Assembly (NCBI GenBank): GCA_964234715.1
Contig: OZ174288.1
Length of the DNA stretch: 64,000 nt
DNA from: Podarcis melisellensis
Lineage: Eukaryota
Strand: one strand, 5' to 3'
The notes beneath the pieces were generated by a model. It was not told where the DNA came from. It worked only from the letters and a program-made list of their open reading frames with translations, and made no database searches. The position numbers were made by a program, and so were the translations under genes. Positions 8,501-53,143 of the stretch are shown here, piece by piece. How positions within the stretch are numbered: position 1 is the stretch's first letter; each line of letters begins with the position of its first letter.

Positions 8501-11276
8501 AAAATGCTTTTGGGGAGGTATGTGAAGAAGCAACGATATGCAAGATGCTTTGCAGGCAACGTCCCACTGCAGGAAACCCTGTTGTTGAGAGCAGCCCATG
8601 AATTCACACAAAGAGCAGCTGGGATGCTGCTATTTCAGCATCCAGGATGAAGCAGACACCAATCAGAGCCTTTAAAATTCAAGCTGAACATACCTTTCAT
8701 GTGCCCGGCCAGAGAAAGAGCAAGCCAACCCCTGCCCTATGACTAAAGACATCACCTGCCTGGCAGAGAGCAAGATACATTTGCCAAGGGCCTGAAGCAC
8801 CTACACAAATTTTAAAAAATGAAATAAAAGACTTCAACCATTTGAGCATTTTTTACACTGCAAAGAACTGGTCTTAGGAACATTCCCCCAAGACGGGGTA
8901 ATTGCAGTCTTTTTACAAAAGCAAAGACCCAAATTCCTTGTGGCTAGAAATCTGCAAGTTTCCAACAATTCTCACAACTGAGAGAAGCAGGTCACACATT
9001 AAGACAGTTGGCCCCAAAGCCTCTCATTCTCACAGGGCCAGATCCGCCACAAGCCACCATCCTTGCTGGCTATTATCAGTGTCCTTAAACTTCCCTCTTC
9101 TGACTTTTAGCTCTTGTGGAACCCCAGCTCTGTTCTGTATGCTGCAGATGGCCTGGAAACACCTTGGGACTAAATCAGCTCAGCAGTAGGGGAAACAGCA
9201 GTTCAGTCGAGAAACCAGAAGCTAGAATCCTGGCGATTACCTTCGGAAGTTTCTTTGATTTGACTGAGGCAAGAGAAGTTTACAAAATGATACTAATCTT
9301 CTGGAAAGCCCAACTCAGGGAACAGCCTCCTCCTACACATTTTATTCACAATTAAGTCCACTGCATACGCTGGAGTAAATGTGCTTAGAATTGCAGCCAC
9401 AGTGGAGGCTAGTACTGTACAGTACTTGGGGCTGAAGAAAGTAAGACTGTTTTTAACTACATACTGGGAACCGTTCAGCATTGTCCTCCTGGACCCAGCC
9501 TGCACTGGAAATTCACTACCCCTGTCTTGGTTCAGCCCCAAAGGCTTTTATCAAAAGATGCACGTATTACAGTGCTGCTCAGTGAGGGTGTCGGAATGTG
9601 AGACATACAGAAGAGAGTGGCCCACAGAAAAGGTATTCTATGTGCTATCAAGCAAAAGCCCCTTTATGATCATAAATTCCAGGGATGCTCTTAACAACTG
9701 AGCCAAAAGAGAGAGAGAGACTGGCTTAGTTTTAAAGAAGATTAGCATGCCAACAAAATAACAGAAGCGACCAGCTGATGAGAATGGTCATAGTTGTCCA
9801 TTTCACTCCAAAGGTCAGAACACAGGAGATGCTAGCTTTTTACTGGACCAATTTAGGTTGCAGGATAAGAAAGTGCAAGGGGAAGTATTCTATGAAACAA
9901 CAAACTTCCTAACCCTAAAGTACTTTAACCCTTTTCACGTCTTCTAAACTTGCAAAAAAGTAGAACAGCCCCTCCTTTATTCTGCATGTGTATTGTTGGG
10001 CAGATTTATGCTTGGCTACGTCACCTTTAGGTGAATCACAAAACCTGGCTGCATTAAGAGTCCAACGCGTTTGACTCTTCATTCAGTAATACAACAGGAG
10101 TGAAAATGCAAAAAAAAAAGAAAGATTGTCAACGGGAGTTCATTCTGACTGAATCCACACAATAAAGCGCCGAAGGCTTATGATCTCCCTACTCTTGTGC
10201 TTTTCAGCTCTGAACAGACTTCTCATTCCAACTCCCACAAAGGGCAAACACAGTAAGGGCGAAATATGTGCCCCAACCCTGCTAAGTCAGCCACGTCTGA
10301 CAGCTTGAGTGCTGTTGGCACCAACTGTGCCTAAAGAAAGGCTAGACTGAGTATGCAGACACGGTTAATGGGCACCTGCCTTACAATTGGCACCACTGCT
10401 TACAATCCCTACCGTCCCCACAAATACAGAATTAAGGGGGAAGGGAGGAATAAGAAGGAAGGGATAAAACCCCCATCATTTATTATCTTTCTCTTAGGCC
10501 TGACCAGATTGAGAGAAAACCGTTTCACCCAAATGCTCAGAAGTCCCTCCTGGCAGAGGTCAGAAGCGAAACACCTGAGGCTGAGATTGGCCACGCTTCT
10601 GCCGCTGGAGCACTGTGCAGCCAGCGCCAATCCCCACATGGCAGAGGCCTGTGGGGTGAATGGCAAGAGACCACACGTCCCAGAACACACAAGGGCACTT
10701 GAGTCTGATTATGGCAAGCAGAACAGCCCACGGATCACTTCAGGTAAGTGCTGGACTGCCAAGGCAAGCTCCCTGCTGCTCCTCCAGCTGCCCAGGGGGC
10801 AACTCTGCCAACTCCTCTCTCGCCTCACATCATCTTCCCTTAGTGGCTGTTTGTGTCAGTCAGGTAAACATGCATTTGTCTGTGTTTACATACAAAAGGC
10901 TTAACATAATAGGCAAAACAAAAACAAAATAGTAGTGCCAGTGAGAAACAATAAAAATGATATAACCACGGCTTATCCATCGAACGTATGGTCAACTTTG
11001 TGCCTCTGTTCCTAGACAAGGAGTCCAGCAGAGTCTATCTGAAGGCACTTGATGTCTCATCTCAGCTGAAAAACTGTTCCAAGGGGACCTGGGGGGTGAG
11101 AGAGGCACAAAAGCCCTGGCACACCAGTGACCCCCTCGGATCCCGTTGCCAAAGTGAAGTCAGATGTCAGAGCCGTCCAGCCACTCCCTCTCCTGCCCCC
11201 TCCTCCAGGAGAACACAGCCTGCTGAGAGCACCTGCGCTCTTGTAGACAGAGCAGACCACACAGCTCTCCAGCGCA

Positions 11277-12468
11277 TCATACGCTCCGCGAGTTATTCAG
11301 CTTAGTCAGCTCACTGGTCTCACCGGGACCTGCTTCTTTGCAGTCGTTTTTCTCAACAGACTTACCAAACCTACGCCCATCCTCTGGCTTCACTGTCTCT
11401 TTTGGGAGATTCTTGAAAGAGGGGAGCCCGCCCTTGAGCTCCAAATTATGGTCCGAGACGTGGGGCGTCTTGTCCAAATTCTGTACAGAAGGCACCAGGT
11501 TGGTGATCTCGTCCGTCGGAGACCGCCCAATGCTGCCATCCACTTGAACACGGATGTCTGGAGATATAGATAACTGGTGGTGGGGGACGATGCCGTTGTC
11601 CATGCACTTGGGGTACAGGAAGGTCTTCATCTGCCCTTTGCCCTTCACGTTCACCGTCCCCCTGTAATCAAAGTCATACCCCATTTTGTTCAGGATGCGG
11701 TAGCTCTCTTCACTCACCTGGATGCGACACTCCACTCCGGTCGTGTCCATCCTGCTGGCGATGTTCACAGTGTCACCCCAAATGTCATACAGGAGCTTGG
11801 TGGTGCCAATGACCCCGGCAGTCAAGGGGCCGTGGTTGAAGCCAATCCGTAGTTTGAAATTGAACCACAGCATGTTGTTGTTAAAGTCATCAACCACTCG
11901 CATCATTTCTTTGGCAAATTCGAAGAGGGTTTGCAAGTGGCCGTGCGGGCTGTTGCTGTCTTGGCACTGGGACGTGTTCAGGCCAGAGGCGGCCATATAC
12001 GTGGCCCCGATGGTCTTGATCTTCTCGATGTTGCTGTAGTCAGGCTTGCTCAGCAGCTCGTCAAAGTCCCCAATCAGTTCGTTCAGGACTCGGTAGCACT
12101 CCTTGCCTCCTTCGTAGTTCTCCTCGTAGAACTCGCTGAAGTTCACGATGCTGGCAAAGATCACGCCACCACTGTCGTGGTTTTTGGAGTAGCTCTGTGA
12201 GACTTTCAGCTGCTCCGCCACGTGGTAGGGAATGATATTCCGCAGCAGCCAGTCCGCCTGGTCCCTCATGCTCTGGATCTTGGTGCGGTGAAGGTCGGCT
12301 TCCACGTCTCCATGGTAATGCAGGCGGTAGCTCACTTCAAACTCACGGTTTAAGAACCAAACCAGGAGGAGGAGGAGGAAGAAGCCCAGAATCACTTCAT
12401 GGCCAATAAGGTCTGCTGGCCGCCTGAAGTCTTCCAAGGTTGATCGGTAGCATGGATTCCTTATGGAA
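11277..12468 (-). CDS. ADCY9: ADCY9 last coding exon (exon 11): end of extracellular loop, TM12, helical domain, C2a catalytic domain and C2b tail
   Basis: Acceptor ccag|TTCCATA; 1192 nt to TGA at 11279-11277; encodes SIRNPC..LIGHEVILGFFLLLLLVWFLNREFEVSYRLHY, KIKTIGATYMAASG, DIWGDTVNIASRM and the AC9-specific ISPDIRVQVDGSIGRSP segment. Confidence 0.98.
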
Positions 12469-13054
12469 CTGGAGTTGATTTTTTAAAGAAAATATAGACA
12501 CACGCACATACACAGAGTAAATGTAAAAAAGAAAAGAAAAAAGCATTTGTATGTTTTCTCTATTCTTATATTCCTATATTCTAATCACAAGCACACAACG
12601 TTACTCTATTTTAAAATGTTATTCTATTTTAAAATATGATTTTCTAGTCCCCCATGGCAACAGAGACAATTATGACAACTTCATATACGCAGGACCAAAC
12701 TAGACATTGTGTCATTCACACAATGGGACTCTCTTTATTTTGGAGTGGGGGGAGTGGAGATTCAGATCAGGACTGCTGTGGTGAGCAAAGATCCAGACCA
12801 CCCACCCACCCACCCTGCCTAGCTTCTTTTTCAAAAATGTTTTATTGTTTTATTCATTTCAATGGGTATATTTCAAGTAAAACATAGTTGAATAAAACCT
12901 AAAACTCTTTTGAAGTTTTATCACTCAGATACAAATCATTTAACTAAATATATGCAAACAAAACACAAAATGAGCAAACCAAATAAAATTCTGTGCTGCC
13001 ATCAAAAGGCAAACAATCGAATCCTTATTCTTCAAATATTTATTTTAGCTGGTA

Positions 13055-13280
13055 CAGTGGTACCTTAGTTTTTGAACGTAATCCATTCTGGAAGCCCGTT
13101 CGAGTTCCGAAACGGAAAACTCAATACAGAAGCCTCAAAATGGAAAACTCAATACAGAAGCCGCGTTTCATGTTTGACTTTCAAGGCGGGTTCAAAAATG
13201 AAGCATTTACTTCCGGGTTTACGGCGTTCGAAAACTGAAACTTTTGTCAACAGAGACGTTCGAAAACTGAGGTACCACTG
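13055..13280. mobile_element. Tigger/pogo-like MITE
   Basis: TIRs CAGTGGTACCT..TTTTGAACGT / ACGTTCGAAAACTGAGGTACCACTG; TA on both flanks. Confidence 0.8.
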
Positions 13281-13754
13281 TATACAGATTTAAGAGGGCC
13301 AATTGGGTCCTGATAGTATATCATGTTTCACAATTTTCTGAACCCTCTAAAAATCCCAAAATTCATTTGCAGGTTCACCACTTAAGTCATGATGTACCAG
13401 TTTTGTTCCAATACAGATTTTCTTCAATTGCTATTTACTTTCCCTCTCCCTACCACCCCCCCCCACTCTCTCTCTCACACACATACATGGATAGTGTCAC
13501 AATTAGTCACTACTTGGGTAAATCACATCATGTCCAGTTTGGTCCTCAGATGTCAAATAAAGTATTCTGTCAGAGACTCATCCCAAGTTTTCATGTGAGA
13601 GTCTGTTTAACCTTCATCTGTCACAGTTATCTGCAGATTAATATGTCTATGACTGACTAATCTAACAGCACCACTCTCTACATTTCAGAAATATGAATGA
13701 TCAAGCAAGCAAAGGAAAAACACAAAAAACTGGGAACTAGGTATCAATTCTTAC

Positions 13755-13796
13755 CTATAGTTCTGTTCTAACTGAAGATGGGAGATTTCTGTGGAG
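13755..13796 (-). CDS. ADCY9: ADCY9 exon 10, copy c (42 nt, phase 2-2)
   Basis: atttcag|CTCCACAGAAATCTCCCATCTTCAGTTAGAACAGAACTATAG|gtaaga; reads (S)STEISHLQLEQNY(S), aligning gap-free to human exon 10 SSVLTSPLDAVQNFS. Confidence 0.85.
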   Translation of the reverse strand, partial: LHRNLPSSVRTEL

Positions 13797-14358
13797 CTGA
13801 AATCCAAATATAGCAAAACATCAACAGAAATGAATAGGAGAGGTAATAATTGCAGGATTTAGTGAGCTTAATCTACATTTAGAATTTCCATTTCTTAGTC
13901 CCAGGGATTCCACTGGAGTTTTACCTATATATAGCTTGGTGGCTTCAGACATTCACCATGAAGTGATGAAAAGAATGAAGTTTGATGTTGATCAAGCCCT
14001 TAAATGGAAAACCATTTGCTTAAGTCTGAAAACAGCTACTTCTGTTCTTGCCATTATTTAGGGTGCAGACACATGGTGAGCGTTTCTTCTCCTCACTTTC
14101 GCTTCTGTGACACCACATATACCAGGCTTCAAAACTAGCACCGATGTAGGCACACACTGCATTTTTCCTTTTTTAAAAATCCAGGCAACTGTTGTATTTC
14201 TCTAGTTTATTTGGTATTTTTTTACAGTCAATTTGGTTGTTCCCGAGCTAAATTCTGAAGCAGGCTGCTGATGTCTAACTCTTTGGACATGGAGTTCAGT
14301 GTACAGTTGACCTTTTTTAGTGTTTCTAATCAATACACAAGCAAGGTTTTATAGCATA

Positions 14359-14814
14359 CAGTGGTACTTTGGTTCTCAAACGCCTTGGTACCTAAATGCC
14401 TTGGTTCTCAAACACTGAAAACCTGGAAGTAAGTGTTCTGGTTTTTGAACATTTTTCAGAAGCCGAACGTCTGATGCGGCTGTCGGCTACTGTTCCCGGG
14501 GCGCCTGCACCAATCAGAAGCTGCGCCTTGGTTTCTGAACATTTTGAAAGTTAAATGGACTTCCAAAATGGATTAAGTTTGGCGCTTTTGTTTTTGCTAT
14601 TTATTTTACATTTTTTGTCTTTGAGGCTTTTTTGGTTAATTTGTTTTTATGACTATATGGAACCCAGTTCAGCTACTGATTGATTGATTGTGTGACTGTG
14701 GAAATGGATAAAAAAAAAAACCCATCCAAGCAATGACTATCATCAGTGCAGGGATGCTTTGGTTTTGGAAAGGACTTCCAGAACGGATTAAGTTTGAGAA
14801 CCAAGGTACCACTG
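14359..14814. mobile_element. Tigger/pogo-like MITE related to 13055-13280
   Basis: TIRs CAGTGGTACTTTGGTTCTCAAAC / GTTTGAGAACCAAGGTACCACTG; TA on both flanks. Confidence 0.8.
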
Positions 14815-14944
14815 TAATAGTTTTAAATAACAGTTCTTTTAAAGCTTTCTTTTTTTAAAAAAAAAAAATTGTTATAGCACTTCATTTAAGCCTTTGAGGA
14901 GAAAGCAGAAAGTGCAAGCAAGACTGCTAGGTGTTAATGATTAC

Positions 14945-14986
14945 CTGATGTTCTGTGTAGAGTTGAAGATTTCCATGGAGCTGAAA
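14945..14986 (-). CDS. ADCY9: ADCY9 exon 10, copy b (42 nt, or 36 nt from the inner AG; phase 2-2)
   Basis: ttgcatttcag|TTTCAGCTCCATGGAAATCTTCAACTCTACACAGAACATCAG|gtaatc; reads (S)FSSMEIFNSTQNI(S); branch-point-like CTGAT upstream; nucleotide similarity to copy c. Confidence 0.75.
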
Positions 14987-16061
14987 CTGAAATGCAAGAA
15001 GCACTGGATCAGCAAGAAAATTCACAGGCCACTATTCCCTCTGCAGCAACAGCTGCTTGACAAAATGTGACTCTGCCCTGATGCATCAGTTATTGCATCA
15101 AGCATTTCTTCAGAAATGGGCAATGAGCCTCATGTATCTCTGCTGTCTCCAAGGTTGACATGTTACAGCTTCTTAGTCCGTGTCGGATAACCAGGTCTAC
15201 AATATGGTCCTTAATGTGTTTAGTTCAATTGACATGAAAAGGCCATTTTAACACCTGCATAGTGCATGTTTTATGAGGATGGAGGTTGTGTAGAACCAAA
15301 CGGGGGAAATGTTCTGGAAGGCCTGTAAACACCACCTTGGTAGCCAAGATAAATTCAGGACGAATTGGCAGTCGCTGCCAGAATCAGCTCACATTATGTT
15401 TATGCTATAGTACCCTAGCTAACAGGACCAGTGGTCAGGGATAATGAGGATTGTAGGCTGGAAAACATTTGGAGGGCCATGTTTGCCTATGCCTGGCATA
15501 AAGGCTCTGCAGGCTGCGATGTAGGCTAGTGCAGTCTAAAAATGCACTGGAATTGGCCCTTCTGGCATTTTTTACATTCTTTTTTGGTATCCCTACATCA
15601 AACCACTCACACAGGCTCTCTTTTGGGCCTGTGGATCAGGACAGTGGTAGGGCAAGCTCAGGCTGGAGGCTCCAAGTGCCCACTGACCTGAAATACAAAC
15701 TGGTCACCTTACAAATGATCTAAGTAAAAACTGGAGATAATTATCCTCCATTTGGCCGTTTCCATTTTCCTTACACCAAACAATAACGGGCAGGGTGCAA
15801 GGAACCTCAAATCCAAGCTCAAACCAAAAAGGAAAAGGCAAAGGGATCCACCTGATGGCTATCATGCAGTAAAGCATGATGACTTCAGATCCAGAGCTCC
15901 AGAGCTTCTCAGAACCATGTGAATATAAGCTGGGGGAGGGGGAGAAGGAGAAAGCAATTGTTCAAGGTCTAAAAATGCTGCTGGTTGATATAAAGACTTA
16001 GGGAAAAGGCTGCCAGGCTCAGTAATAGCCAGAAACGAAAGGAAATCCAATGAATGCTTAC

Positions 16062-16103
16062 CTAAAGTTCTTTACTGATTCAATATATGATTCCTCCACA
16101 GAG
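16062..16103 (-). CDS. ADCY9: ADCY9 exon 10, copy a (42 nt, phase 2-2)
   Basis: gcgtttttttcag|CTCTGTGGAGGAATCATATATTGAATCAGTAAAGAACTTTAG|gtaagc; reads (S)SVEESYIESVKNF(S), gap-free alignment to human exon 10; strong acceptor and donor. Confidence 0.85.
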
Positions 16104-16532
16104 CTGAAAAAAACGCAAGAGACAGACAACAACAAATCAAAAGCATGGAGGAGAAAAAGAACAGCTGCAAAAAACACCCCTCAAAAAGAGAAAAACGAAA
16201 CACCCCTCCTGGCTGCCACTCTCCAAATCTCATTCTGGGCTGCTAGATACCCATTCTGACACGGAGTTATACACCAGCCTCAATCCTCCTTCCCCCCAGG
16301 GGTTAACCACATTACTTCACAAAACGTCAAAGTATACATCTGATGGCTAAAGTGGCAGCACTTCTAATCAACAAAGACACCTGGTGAATCTGCTTCCAGG
16401 TGGATGAGCCATAAGAATACCTATTTCACTCCAGCTTCCTGATGATGGTCTCCAAGACCCTCACTGGGGAAAAGACACTGTCCCAACTCACAGGCAACAG
16501 GCAGGCAGCACCAGTTTTCCTCAAAGGCTCAC

Positions 16533-40341: not shown

Positions 40342-41178
<837 letters not shown>

Positions 41179-41521
41179 TTAGAGTCCAGGAACTTTCTGA
41201 CATCTGGCACATGACAATGATTGCCCAGAACCCTTAGTGATACATCTTTGGAAACCCAAGCTCCAGCTCCCACCAACCGCAGCACCTGGGGTGACCAGTG
41301 GTCAGGGATGATGGGAGCTGTAGTTCAGAAACATCTGGAAGACTGCAGGTATAGCTGCGCTGCATGAAGAACCCCATCCTATTTGCTGTTATCCCTTGAG
41401 TGGATAGTTAGAGTGGAATGGAGAAAGCAAAGTTCAAAAGGGGAGGAATGCAATTCAAAAGCTTGGCCAAATTGTGAAGTCGAACTGATGTACAGTACAT
41501 ACTGCACTATTGACAATGCTA

Positions 41522-41839
<318 letters not shown>

Positions 41840-42729
41840 TCAAGGAGAAAGCAAAACAAAGGCCACACTCACACATCTGGCAAAAAAAAAAACAGTTAAA
41901 ATCTCAGCTCCCTCAAAGCCCAACAAGTTCACAGCAGAGGAAAACAACCCTACTGTCCCTTCCAAAACTCTCTTATCAGTGCTTATGCTAAGCAGACAAA
42001 TGGTTTCATTCCTTTTTCCTGGCTGATGACGTGACTTCAGAATACATCCTGATGGCTTAAAATAAATAGCTTCTTGAAGATGTGAAATGACTATCAAATC
42101 AGTATTCATTGTCCCAACTTCTGCCACACTCAAGGAAGAGGGCAATTCCCTGCTCTGTTTGGCAGAAACCTGGGTAGCTATAACACTACCACTCATTCTG
42201 CTGACACAAAGGAAGATAGTACAGCTCAGGCAACAGACTCCACTCTGGAGACCACATTTTTGCTGCAGTTTCTAGAGCTGTGCTTAGAAGCATTTTGCCA
42301 CCTGGTCCAAGCTGTTCAGCATCGTATGCAGAAAAGGAACCCCCAAATTGCTGAGCTTGTTTCATCTTGCTTAGAAATTTCATTTAAATGGAAAGCTTTG
42401 CTCATTGGGAATCAGAGAGAAAGGAAGCCCCAGAGGGTGGTAGGAGGTGGGGAGGAGAGAACACTGAAAAGGTCACTCCTGCTCAAACTAATTGGCTCCA
42501 TGCAGGGAAGGCAGAAAATTGCAAGTTCCCTTGTGCTTGCCAACTGTGGTTCTTGCAGTCAGGCAACCACCTGAGGAGGGAAGCCAGCCCGATGGGGAGT
42601 CTCCTGGCCTAGCCCGACCTGCTAAGCAGGGTGCACTCCAGAGAGGAAATGGGGCTGAGCTGGAAAAGCTGGAGCTTGAAGCACAGCTAGCAGGAACTGT
42701 TGCTGCGGCTGCGGCTGCTGCTGCTGCTG

Positions 42730-42732
<3 letters not shown>

Positions 42733-42775
<43 letters not shown>
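42733..42775. repeat. (CT)n microsatellite preceded by a (GCT/GCG)n tract
   Basis: Directly visible. Confidence 0.95.
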
Positions 42776-42778
<3 letters not shown>

Positions 42779-42915
42779 CCTGGCTTGGCCCCAAGGCAGA
42801 GACTTTTTTCTGCATGTGAGGCCTGGGCACACCAGGGAGCTCACTTTGCTGGACCCTGACCATACAAAGGTCTGTTCTGACACTAACTACAGAGATTTTA
42901 ACAACCCCTATGCCG

Positions 42916-43656
<741 letters not shown>

Positions 43657-49394: not shown

Positions 49395-49577
49395 NNNNNN
49401 NNNNNNNNNNNNNNNNNNNNNNNNNNNNNNNNNNNNNNNNNNNNNNNNNNNNNNNNNNNNNNNNNNNNNNNNNNNNNNNNNNNNNNNNNNNNNNNNNNNN
49501 NNNNNNNNNNNNNNNNNNNNNNNNNNNNNNNNNNNNNNNNNNNNNNNNNNNNNNNNNNNNNNNNNNNNNNNNNNNNN
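49395..49577. other. Assembly gap (183 N)
   Basis: Run of n, preceded by a purine-rich, probably LINE-derived tract (about 48400-49394). Confidence 1.
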
Positions 49578-49715
49578 TTGGGATTATACACACATGAAGG
49601 TGATAGTAATCAGAGAAGGGAAGATCTCCCAGGGTGGGAGACTGGAGAAGAAAGGGATGCTCCCAGGTAAGAACTGGGAGGGTCCACCCCTTTCTGTGAA
49701 AGCCAAGAGTTAAGC

Positions 49716-51241: not shown

Positions 51242-51700
51242 TATTTTCTGCAGCAATGCTGAACTGGTTGCCTCTAGACCACAACCCATACAGGACCACT
51301 TGGTAACCTACCCCATACAGCTGAGGCTTTAAACTAGCAAAAAAGGCACTGTAGATTTTGCATCCAGCAAAAGGGGAGAAAATGTAGAAGCACATAGCAA
51401 AACAGTGAGAACACCTAGAGGGACAGAGCCCACCACCCTTGCTTTCTTTAGATCTGCACTTAAAAATGCAAAATGCCTTTCGACCCAAATCCTTCTCTGA
51501 AGCTTCTTGGGCAGCTGCTTCTCTCCTCACTCCCACCCCTTCACTGTCCTGCGCTGGTGAGCAGTGGCATTGGGGTAGGGGGCAAAGGGGGTGGCTTGAC
51601 AGCCAGGGTAGGTCTGTTGGGAATATTGTGTATGGGAGCTGTTTTATTTAGCCCTACAATATGGCACGAAGAGGGCTGGAGCCTCTCCAGGTGAACTGAC

Positions 51701-53143
51701 CAGCGGTGGAAGTAGCTGGAGGGTTGCTGTGAGGTGCTGGGCTAGTGGCAGGCAGGGCTGGGTGGGCTTGCTCAGAGGATGCCTCCTCGTGACCACCGAG
51801 GGTGTCTTCATTGCTGGGAGGAGTGGGCATTGCTTCTGCTTCACTGGGGCCTCCCTCTTGATGCTGGAGCTGGGTGTCAACCTCAGGGTCAGATGTCAGG
51901 CTGGGATCTCCTGGCTCCACTTCACCCATGCCTTTCCCTGGGGAAGTCCCCTCTTCCCCCTCCTCTGCTCTCCCCTCTCTCTCTGATGGGGCAGGACCCT
52001 CTTCTTCTCCTCCTATTCCATGGGCCATGGCTGCTTCTCCTGCCAAGGCAGTAGCACCCTCTTCTGTCGCTTCCACTGTGCTGTCATCTTCCTGTGACTG
52101 AGGGCCTTCTTCCTCAGCCGCATCTTTCTGAGAATTGTCTCCTTCCTCAGCTGCATCTTCCTGAGAATTGTCTTCTTCCTCAGCCTCATCTTCCTCAGAG
52201 CTGTCTTCTTCCTCAGCCGCCTCTTCCTCAGAATTGTCTTCTTCCCCAGCCTCATCTTCCTCAGAATCTTCTCTTTCCTCAGACTCATCTTCATCAGAAC
52301 CTTCTCCTTCTTGTAGGCTGGTATCCCCCTCCCTGGCCACTGTAGCCCCTTCTTCTCCCTCCTCCTCCTCTGCATCAAGCTGCCCAGGACCATCCACTGT
52401 CTCCTCCTCTGCTTCTTCCTCCCGGGGGCTGGTGTCCTCTTCTTCCTCAGACTCTTCTTGCCCCTCTAACATGTGGGGCTCCTCTGGTGCCCTGCCTGGT
52501 GCCCCCAAGGTGCTCACTGCAGGGGAGCCATCACTAAAGTGTCTTTCCACAGAGGTAGCTCCATCTTCACTGCCCAAGTCAGCAGTGATGTTGTCCTCCT
52601 GAGCAGAGGACGGCTCCTCTCTGGTCTTGACAGGGGGCTGAAGGAGGCTCTGGGAGGGGGCCCCACTTCCGCCTGGGGGAGCATCTTTGGCAACTCCCTC
52701 TGACTGGACCTGCTCACTCTCTTTAGCCTCGTCTCCAGCCAAAACATCCTCCTTGTTGATGGCGAGATATTGCTCAGGTGCTTCCCTTTGCCCATCCGTG
52801 TCATGCCCTTTGTCGGGGGCATTCTGTGGTTCAGCAACAGGGGCTTCCTTTTCTTTCAGACCCTCATCTTCCAAGGAGCTGGTGTCCAGTTCAGCAGCTG
52901 CCTCAGTGGAGCCATCAGCACGAGGGCTTCCTTCCACACCTGTGCTGGCTTCCTCCTGGCTGTCTAAGGGCCGGAAGGGAATTCCTGTCCCAGGTGGGAT
53001 GGCAGCGGTGGCAGCAGCAGCAGCAGCAGAGTCTCCATAGAGCAGCTTCTCCTTCTCTGCCAGGCTTGGGTCTCCGGGCAACAAGCCTCCTTCGGCAAAG
53101 GTGGCAGAGTCTTCTGTGCCATCCGGGGCAGAGACTTGCAGTT
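51701..53143 (-). CDS. SRL: Sarcalumenin large acidic Ca2+-binding cassette exon (1443 nt, phase 1-1; long isoform)
   Basis: ctatttag|AACTGCAAGTC...GCTG|gtcagt; begins ELQVSAPDGTED..GDPSLAEKEKLLYGD, matching mouse ELQVSASGGTED..GDASLEEKERALYAD; Glu/Asp-rich; length divisible by 3, so skipping yields the short 53-kDa-type isoform. Confidence 0.9.
52107..52290 (-). repeat. Coding 33-bp minisatellite (about 5.5 units) in the SRL acidic exon
   Basis: Units such as TTCCTCAGAATTGTCTTCTTCCCCAGCCTCATC; peptide EEDNSEEEAAE / EEDSSEEDEAE / EEDNSQEDAAE / EGDNSQKDAAE. Confidence 0.85.

Follow-up and report, generated by a model that had tools for sequence, protein, structure and literature searches.

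The 64,000-nucleotide stretch of DNA from the lizard Podarcis melisellensis that was analyzed here (GenBank assembly GCA_964234715.1, contig OZ174288.1; referred to as the window) carries on its minus strand ADCY9, the gene for adenylyl cyclase type 9 (AC9). Between the exon for transmembrane helix 11 (TM11) and the last exon of this gene lie three diverged tandem copies, A, B and C, of a small exon encoding part of the extracellular TM11-TM12 loop. Orthologous copies are present in other squamates. In this lizard they would most likely be used as additive, partly optional modules of loop sequence and of N-glycosylation sites, a reading to which we assign a probability of about 0.7. An earlier inspection of the window (the original prediction) had already named the gene and proposed the triplicated loop exon, and both proposals held.

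The identity of the gene was determined by translating the exons of the window and searching them singly, none as a joined spliced protein. Exon 9 (16681-16533, minus strand; 149 nt, phase 0 to 2) encodes TM11 and ends with the residues LCPD and the letters AG of a split serine codon, followed by gtgagc. Its translation matched residues 895-943 of bovine and human AC9 with an E value of 5.5e-17, and only AC9 chains were matched. The coding part of the last exon (12468-11277, minus strand, up to the stop codon) comprises the remainder of the loop, TM12, the C2 catalytic domain and the C2b tail. It is preceded by an acceptor ending in ctccag and starts with T, which completes the split codon to AGT (Ser). 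This exon matched residues 959-1353 of the solved human and bovine AC9 chains with E values of about 1e-235 (4e-236 for human AC9), compared to 9e-76 for AC8 and 2e-72 for AC5. In mammalian AC9 numbering exactly 15 residues separate the two matches. This spacing corresponds in mammalian AC9 to exactly one 42-nt exon flanked by split serine codons, the number that the original prediction had given for human ADCY9.

All three copies lie on the minus strand. Copy A (16103-16062; 42 nt, SVEESYIESVKNF) is the first and starts 429 nt past exon 9. It is followed by copy B, which spans 14986-14945 in its longer form (42 nt, FSSMEIFNSTQNI), and by copy C (13796-13755; 42 nt, STEISHLQLEQNY). The introns from exon 9 to the last exon measure 429, 1075, 1148 and 1286 nt. 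Each copy is stop-free, has phase 2-2, and is bordered by an acceptor ending in ttcag and a donor AG|gtaa; these coordinates, phases, peptides and intron sizes were re-read and agree with those first given. Stop-free, in-phase 42-mers between AG and GT occur about twice per kb, and the 4.07-kb interval between exon 9 and the last exon contains 10 of them. A filter for splice signals (pyrimidine-tract value of 0.6 or more, and 6 or more of the 8 donor letters AG|GTRAGT matched) left A, B and C only. Copies A and C are identical at 25 of 42 positions in an ungapped alignment, and B can be aligned with both by means of a single 6-nt gap. Furthermore, B and C have about 20 nt of downstream intron in common. 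A repeat search of the interval placed the acceptor regions in one family (repeats D2 and D6), with D2 linking all three. A, B and C are homologous exons that lie next to each other and share their splice-site context, which makes the array a tandem exon duplication.

The splice signals of the copies follow a common plan. Across species, all 19 intact copies exhibit the branch-point-like motif ctgyTRAT at about position -25, a stretch resembling TTGCATTT, a (t)ttcag acceptor and a gtaag or gtgag donor. In the window the regions upstream of A (16104-16143) and B (14987-15026) read ctgyTRAT...TTGCATTT...tttcag on the minus strand. The 3' splice region of C (13797-13836, minus strand) contains a branch-point-like ctgTTGAT at about -25, followed by the GG-interrupted pyrimidine tract atttggatttcag. 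This arrangement, a weaker acceptor, is typical of the C group and was found again at the C copies of the skink Lerista, the cordylid Hemicordylus and the anguid Elgaria and at a gecko pseudo-exon described below. Weaker acceptors are common among optional exons. The branch-point, pyrimidine-tract and donor context of the corresponding bird exon is the same as that of the lizard copies; consequently, the duplicated unit brought its own splice signals.

Copy B has two CAG acceptors 6 nt apart, a distal one at 14988-87 and a proximal one at 14982-81. Use of the proximal acceptor would yield a 36-nt exon (14980-14945, minus strand) encoding SMEIFNSTQNI, to which the distal form adds the residues F-S. 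At the site of the distal AG the relatives have TG within the pyrimidine tract (ttcTGtttcag, versus ttcAGtttcag here). A branch-point-like A lies at about -29, so that both AGs are probably usable. The length of exactly 42 nt that had been proposed for each copy therefore applies to A and C, whereas B measures 36 or 42 nt here and 36 nt in four related genera. B was presumably 36 nt long ancestrally in the clade of this lizard, with the 42-nt exon as one of two possible forms.

In order to follow the copies in other species, eight genomic loci were subjected to the same exon scan (L001 to L008: Phrynocephalus, Lerista, Elgaria, Hemicordylus, Sceloporus, the gecko Sphaerodactylus, the snake Candoia and the bird Pterocles, the last being the one non-squamate outgroup DNA). 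The loci of Phrynocephalus and Elgaria each contain A with 42 nt, B with 36 nt and C with 42 nt. Sceloporus has A (42 nt) and B (36 nt) without C. Hemicordylus has two copies of 42 nt each, Sphaerodactylus copies of 39 and 42 nt, and Candoia and Pterocles one copy each. Lerista has A (42 nt) and an intact C of 42 nt. This C, at 9256-9297 of the Lerista edwardsae locus (STELPHLGLEQNY), has a tttcag acceptor and an AG|gtaaga donor and is missing from the deposited protein model. At the Hemicordylus capensis locus the 'ADCY9-like' gene model begins just upstream of B, and a MOSC-domain gene lies 5' of it on the other strand; this locus may represent either a truncated gene copy or an assembly break.

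BLAST comparison of the window interval with these loci revealed the cassettes as islands of similarity amid mostly unalignable introns. Copy C was 83% identical to Lerista over 86 nt (E 3e-19) and 81% to Hemicordylus over 99 nt (E 3e-20), and copy B was 72% identical to Elgaria over 166 nt (E 3e-23). Orthology was then assessed from the flanks only, with the exon itself excluded along with the adjoining 22 nt on its acceptor side and 8 nt on its donor side. By position and flanks, orthologues of A were assigned in Elgaria, Sceloporus, Phrynocephalus, Candoia, Lerista and the gecko. The B group consists of the B copies of the window, Elgaria and Sceloporus and the first Hemicordylus copy, with local scores of 29-68 against a shuffled 99th percentile of 22. 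This first Hemicordylus copy is an orthologue of B, not of A, scoring 68 upstream to window B and 50 downstream to Elgaria B. The C group unites the window, Lerista, Hemicordylus, Elgaria and Phrynocephalus with a third site in the gecko. Of the three, C most resembles the one exon present in birds, turtles, crocodilians and mammals, and the bird exon had its best match in C. B is 36 nt long at the loci of Elgaria, Sceloporus and Phrynocephalus and, judged from the protein, in Varanus, and 42 nt long in Hemicordylus and the gecko.

Apparently unused copies have decayed. The third gecko site is a pseudo-exon of C, reading STELPHFK and then TAG, with a deletion of about 9 nt and a lost GT donor. 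The Candoia interval contains no trace of B or C, and the bird locus no relic of further copies beside its one exon. The set is not private to this genome, as flank orthology places A, B and C across agamid, anguid, cordylid, skink and gecko loci, and the array is ancient, squamate-wide and already present in RefSeq, GenBank and UniProt models of several lizards. The proposed search of the orthologous interval thus found copies in the other squamates and one in the bird. In the simplest history the triplication would predate the split of geckos from other squamates, and 6 nt of B would have been lost in the common ancestor of this lizard, the anguimorphs and the iguanians. Independent losses would then have removed B and C in snakes, C in Sceloporus, B in Lerista and C in Sphaerodactylus. 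A tree of the last exon did not resolve the position of this lizard, and base composition distorts that tree.

One could suppose that A is the sole working exon in this lizard and that B and C are unused relics which merely look intact. The snake and skink models use A only, the intact C of Lerista is unannotated, and C has a pN/pS ratio (see below) of about 0.8 and the weaker, GG-interrupted pyrimidine tract. The fate of unused copies speaks against this idea, for they decay or vanish, as did C in the gecko and B and C in the snake. B and C of the window, on the other hand, retain frame, length, acceptor, donor and branch-point motif, and they are 72-83% identical to their orthologues, together with 100-160 nt of upstream intron, apparently across deep squamate splits. 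In addition, these orthologues are included in the models of Varanus, Elgaria, Sceloporus, Phrynocephalus and Hemicordylus. We therefore regard unused relics as improbable.

The use of the copies was followed in database proteins, from which the loop between the TM11 and TM12 anchors was read. The proteins of mammals, birds, turtles and crocodilians contain one copy with the consensus S[IM]ETSHLDSAQNF, and those of snakes a single A-like copy (FLEESNLVSPRNA). A, B and C stand in series in Varanus (RefSeq and UniProt), Elgaria (RefSeq) and Phrynocephalus (GenBank). Two copies, A and B, are present in both Sceloporus isoforms (X1 and X2) and in the geckos Eublepharis and Heteronotia, and one copy in the gecko Euleptes. 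Two species have pairs of RefSeq model isoforms 14 residues apart. In Sphaerodactylus X1 contains A and B and X2 only A, and in the 'ADCY9-like' gene of Hemicordylus X1 contains B and C and X2 only B. These in-frame forms with and without one exon suggest that B in Sphaerodactylus and C in Hemicordylus behave as cassette exons. Among the annotated squamate proteins that reach from exon 9 into the last exon, two elapid UniProt models (Naja and Laticauda) skip exons, and all the others include copy A. In none of the annotated squamate models do B or C take the place of A.

These models bear on whether the copies exclude each other. With mutually exclusive splicing each transcript would contain one of A, B and C, giving three forms of AC9 that are about equally long and differ at the loop tip. 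The copies do resemble classical mutually exclusive arrays, being neighboring homologues in phase with each other and comparable in size, and the middles of their peptides have diverged. However, the squamate models string copies together or drop downstream ones, and none substitutes another copy for A. Serial runs of two or three copies were found in Varanus, Elgaria, Phrynocephalus, Sceloporus, Eublepharis, Heteronotia, Sphaerodactylus X1 and Hemicordylus X1; the annotated proteins of the relatives thus do not appear to follow a rule of one copy per transcript. Nor was a mechanism found that would enforce such a rule, be it a short intron, a U2/U12 clash, a frameshift leading to nonsense-mediated decay or competing pairings. 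The introns between the copies and to the last exon are 1075-1286 nt long and all GT-AG (U2-type), and with lengths of 42, 36 or 42, and 42 nt every combination remains in frame. When the first 80 nt of intron 9 were compared with the whole interval at the eight loci, no conserved docking/selector duplex was detected, the best pairings having z scores of about -3 at non-homologous positions. One 15-nt pairing (I16) lies close to the donor of exon 9 and is roughly what would be expected by chance (expectation about 0.4). Mutual exclusion is, consequently, very improbable. Of the two uses that the original prediction had left side by side, exclusive use finds neither support nor a visible mechanism, and cumulative use is what the models of the relatives contain, with optional downstream copies.

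All three copies could be constitutive in this lizard, without any alternative splicing, resulting in a fixed loop that is 40 residues longer. For both Varanus and Elgaria a single model exists, containing A, B and C, and the splice signals of all three copies are good in the window. Against this, the isoform pairs of the gecko and the cordylid differ by one downstream copy, the copies have long conserved upstream intronic flanks and C a low synonymous divergence, both typical of regulated exons, and B has tandem acceptors. Constitutive inclusion of the whole array is accordingly a possibility worth keeping, although an unlikely one. Copy C is flanked by copies of a short interspersed repeat in opposite orientation (13034-13283 and 14356-14835), with the core TACAGTGGTACC..GTTCTCAAAC. 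The inverted arms are complementary at 70% over 80 nt and at 75% over 68 nt. Inverted repeat pairs can promote exon skipping or back-splicing.

We favor additive, partly optional modules, which may have arisen and be used as follows. An ancestral 42-nt ADCY9 exon encoding the tip of the TM11-TM12 extracellular loop would have undergone two tandem duplications before the radiation of crown squamates. The duplicated unit would have consisted of the exon, about 40 nt of upstream intron with branch point and pyrimidine tract, and the donor. Phase 2-2 and a length divisible by three in every copy make serial splicing possible. Each included copy would add 12-14 residues to the loop between the LCPD and NxC cysteines and usually bring one N-x-S sequon, with B bringing a second, internal one. 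A would always be included, and B and C would be constitutive or optional cassette exons. The outcome would be forms of AC9 that differ in the length of the last extracellular loop and in the number of its glycans, which may in turn affect folding, trafficking or signalling of AC9. A stronger version, which we consider rather unlikely, is a regulated combinatorial system that would draw on up to eight in-frame combinations, and more with the two acceptors of B, for tuning loop length and glycan load by tissue or state. Cyclase membrane domains have been proposed as receptors for lipids (PMC11606603). If they act as receptors, and if the combinatorial system were real, the combinations of copies would present alternative extracellular faces of squamate AC9.

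The glycan part of this proposal stems from the ends of the copies. Near-universally kept across them are the length, the phase and a C-terminal N-x followed by AG. In this lizard every possible next exon starts with C or T after AG. Thus, the split codon encodes serine and each copy ends in an N-x-S sequon, namely N-F-S for A, N-I-S for B and N-Y-S for C; B contains the internal sequon N-S-T in addition. The original prediction had taken the kept frame, splice signals and terminal N-x as signs of selection, a view that we share, and had overlooked the sequon. The junction sequon is preserved in 16 of the 19 intact copies across species, the exceptions being Elgaria A, Phrynocephalus C and Sceloporus B. 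A, B and C fit the pattern of N-glycosylation sites in a predicted extracellular loop and would be candidates for occupancy. At the start of the last exon (12440-12468) the window encodes NPCYRST and has thus lost the second loop sequon that other amniotes conserve (NPCNSS or NxCNRS). The cassettes would accordingly supply every sequon of the loop in this lizard. The array lies between two conserved cysteines, the invariant one of LCPD (C206) and that of NxC (C255, conserved in at least 90%). The homologous asparagine of human AC9 is presumably an annotated or mutated glycosylation site. On gels AC9 forms multiple bands, which have partly been attributed to glycosylation (PMC9724675).

Selection on the peptides was estimated for each copy, as had been proposed in the form of dN/dS, by the pooled ratio of nonsynonymous to synonymous proportions of differences (pN/pS). 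The values were 0.67 for A, 0.41 for B and 0.81 for C; being pooled proportions from short and partly saturated exons, they are noisy, and that of C is indistinguishable from 1. Constraint on the peptides thus seems to be weak, as expected for a flexible loop. For C, the window, Lerista, Hemicordylus and Elgaria showed little synonymous divergence (0-0.31), which fits a nucleotide-level, splicing-related constraint. An AlphaFold model of the three-copy TM2 half (the second membrane domain) of Varanus AC9, calculated from 26 aligned sequences, had a mean pLDDT of 47.7, with the loop as coil below 40. Such a poor model is compatible with a flexible loop but no evidence for it, and it is unfit for a fold search or for the assignment of cysteine pairs.

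Several points weigh against modular use of the copies in this lizard. The isoforms of the relatives are computational gene models, and that of Phrynocephalus may be purely ab initio. The Hemicordylus model belongs to a truncated 'ADCY9-like' gene with no exon 9 within the fetched 19-kb locus. For the window itself, usage is extrapolated from its splice signals and from these models. Since the pN/pS ratio of C does not differ from 1, peptide selection on C is unproven, and the conservation may act mainly at the level of splicing and nucleotide sequence. The disulfide bond between the LCPD and NxC cysteines and the glycans are likewise predicted from sequence motifs. Finally, the repeated losses in snakes, Sceloporus, Lerista and the gecko indicate that squamates can do without the extra copies.

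Tandem exon duplication is a known event, and arrays of this kind have been surveyed in animal genomes, where they are often discussed together with mutually exclusive exons. The ADCY9 array resembles them in consisting of neighboring homologues that have the same phase, nearly the same length and co-duplicated splice signals. It differs in that the models of the relatives point to serial inclusion with optional downstream copies instead of one out of several, and in that the unit is very small (36-42 nt) and located in an extracellular loop, not in a folded domain. It would thus be an example of exon duplication used additively and not exclusively. With exon 10 of mammals, birds, turtles and crocodilians the copies share the position between the TM11 exon and the last exon, phase 2-2 and the N-F-S ending; those animals have one copy, whereas squamates have up to three.

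In a literature search no paper was found that describes, for any adenylyl cyclase, an exon array or splice variants of this loop, in line with the original statement that no such array was known, and reviews of AC9, including one of 2026, mention no splice variants. Nothing specific was found on AC9 glycosylation sites either. Mutagenesis of such sites in human AC9 has reportedly been published. In AC6, loss of glycosylation at N805 and N890 in the extracellular loops of TM2 lowers activity and alters regulation (PMC11021717). AC6 and ADCY9 are alike in having sequons in these loops, whereas the number of sequons in ADCY9 would follow exon copy number and inclusion. What the membrane domain of the cyclases and its loops contribute is still under discussion (PMC12414865, PMC11606603). 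Squamate AC9 proteins contain one, two or three of the loop modules, which have persisted from before the divergence of geckos and have been lost repeatedly. This natural series is a ready comparative experiment on the function of the last extracellular loop and its glycans.

Some further observations were made on AC9 proteins of other animals. In many bird, mammal and snake models, including elapid ones, the 42-nt exon is skipped or replaced; the micro-exons of ADCY9 are often mis-annotated. The Logan protein P0276 carries the loop that the original prediction had given for human AC9. An ADCY9-like protein of the frog Ascaphus truei (P0179) contains the 12-residue unit SSLIPESDTNYS twice, as a perfect tandem at the same loop position, which could be either an independent recent exon duplication or an artefact of assembly or annotation.

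Elsewhere in the window, a run of N at about 49400-49640, visible as runs of X in the translations of open reading frames, marks an assembly gap or a masked stretch. Open reading frames at 40342-43626 and 51654-53084 on the minus strand include some that resemble an EHD/dynamin-like GTPase region and a long, very acidic one rich in Glu/Asp. Together they look like sarcalumenin (SRL), the gene of which is a neighbor of ADCY9 in mammals, and are candidates for this gene.

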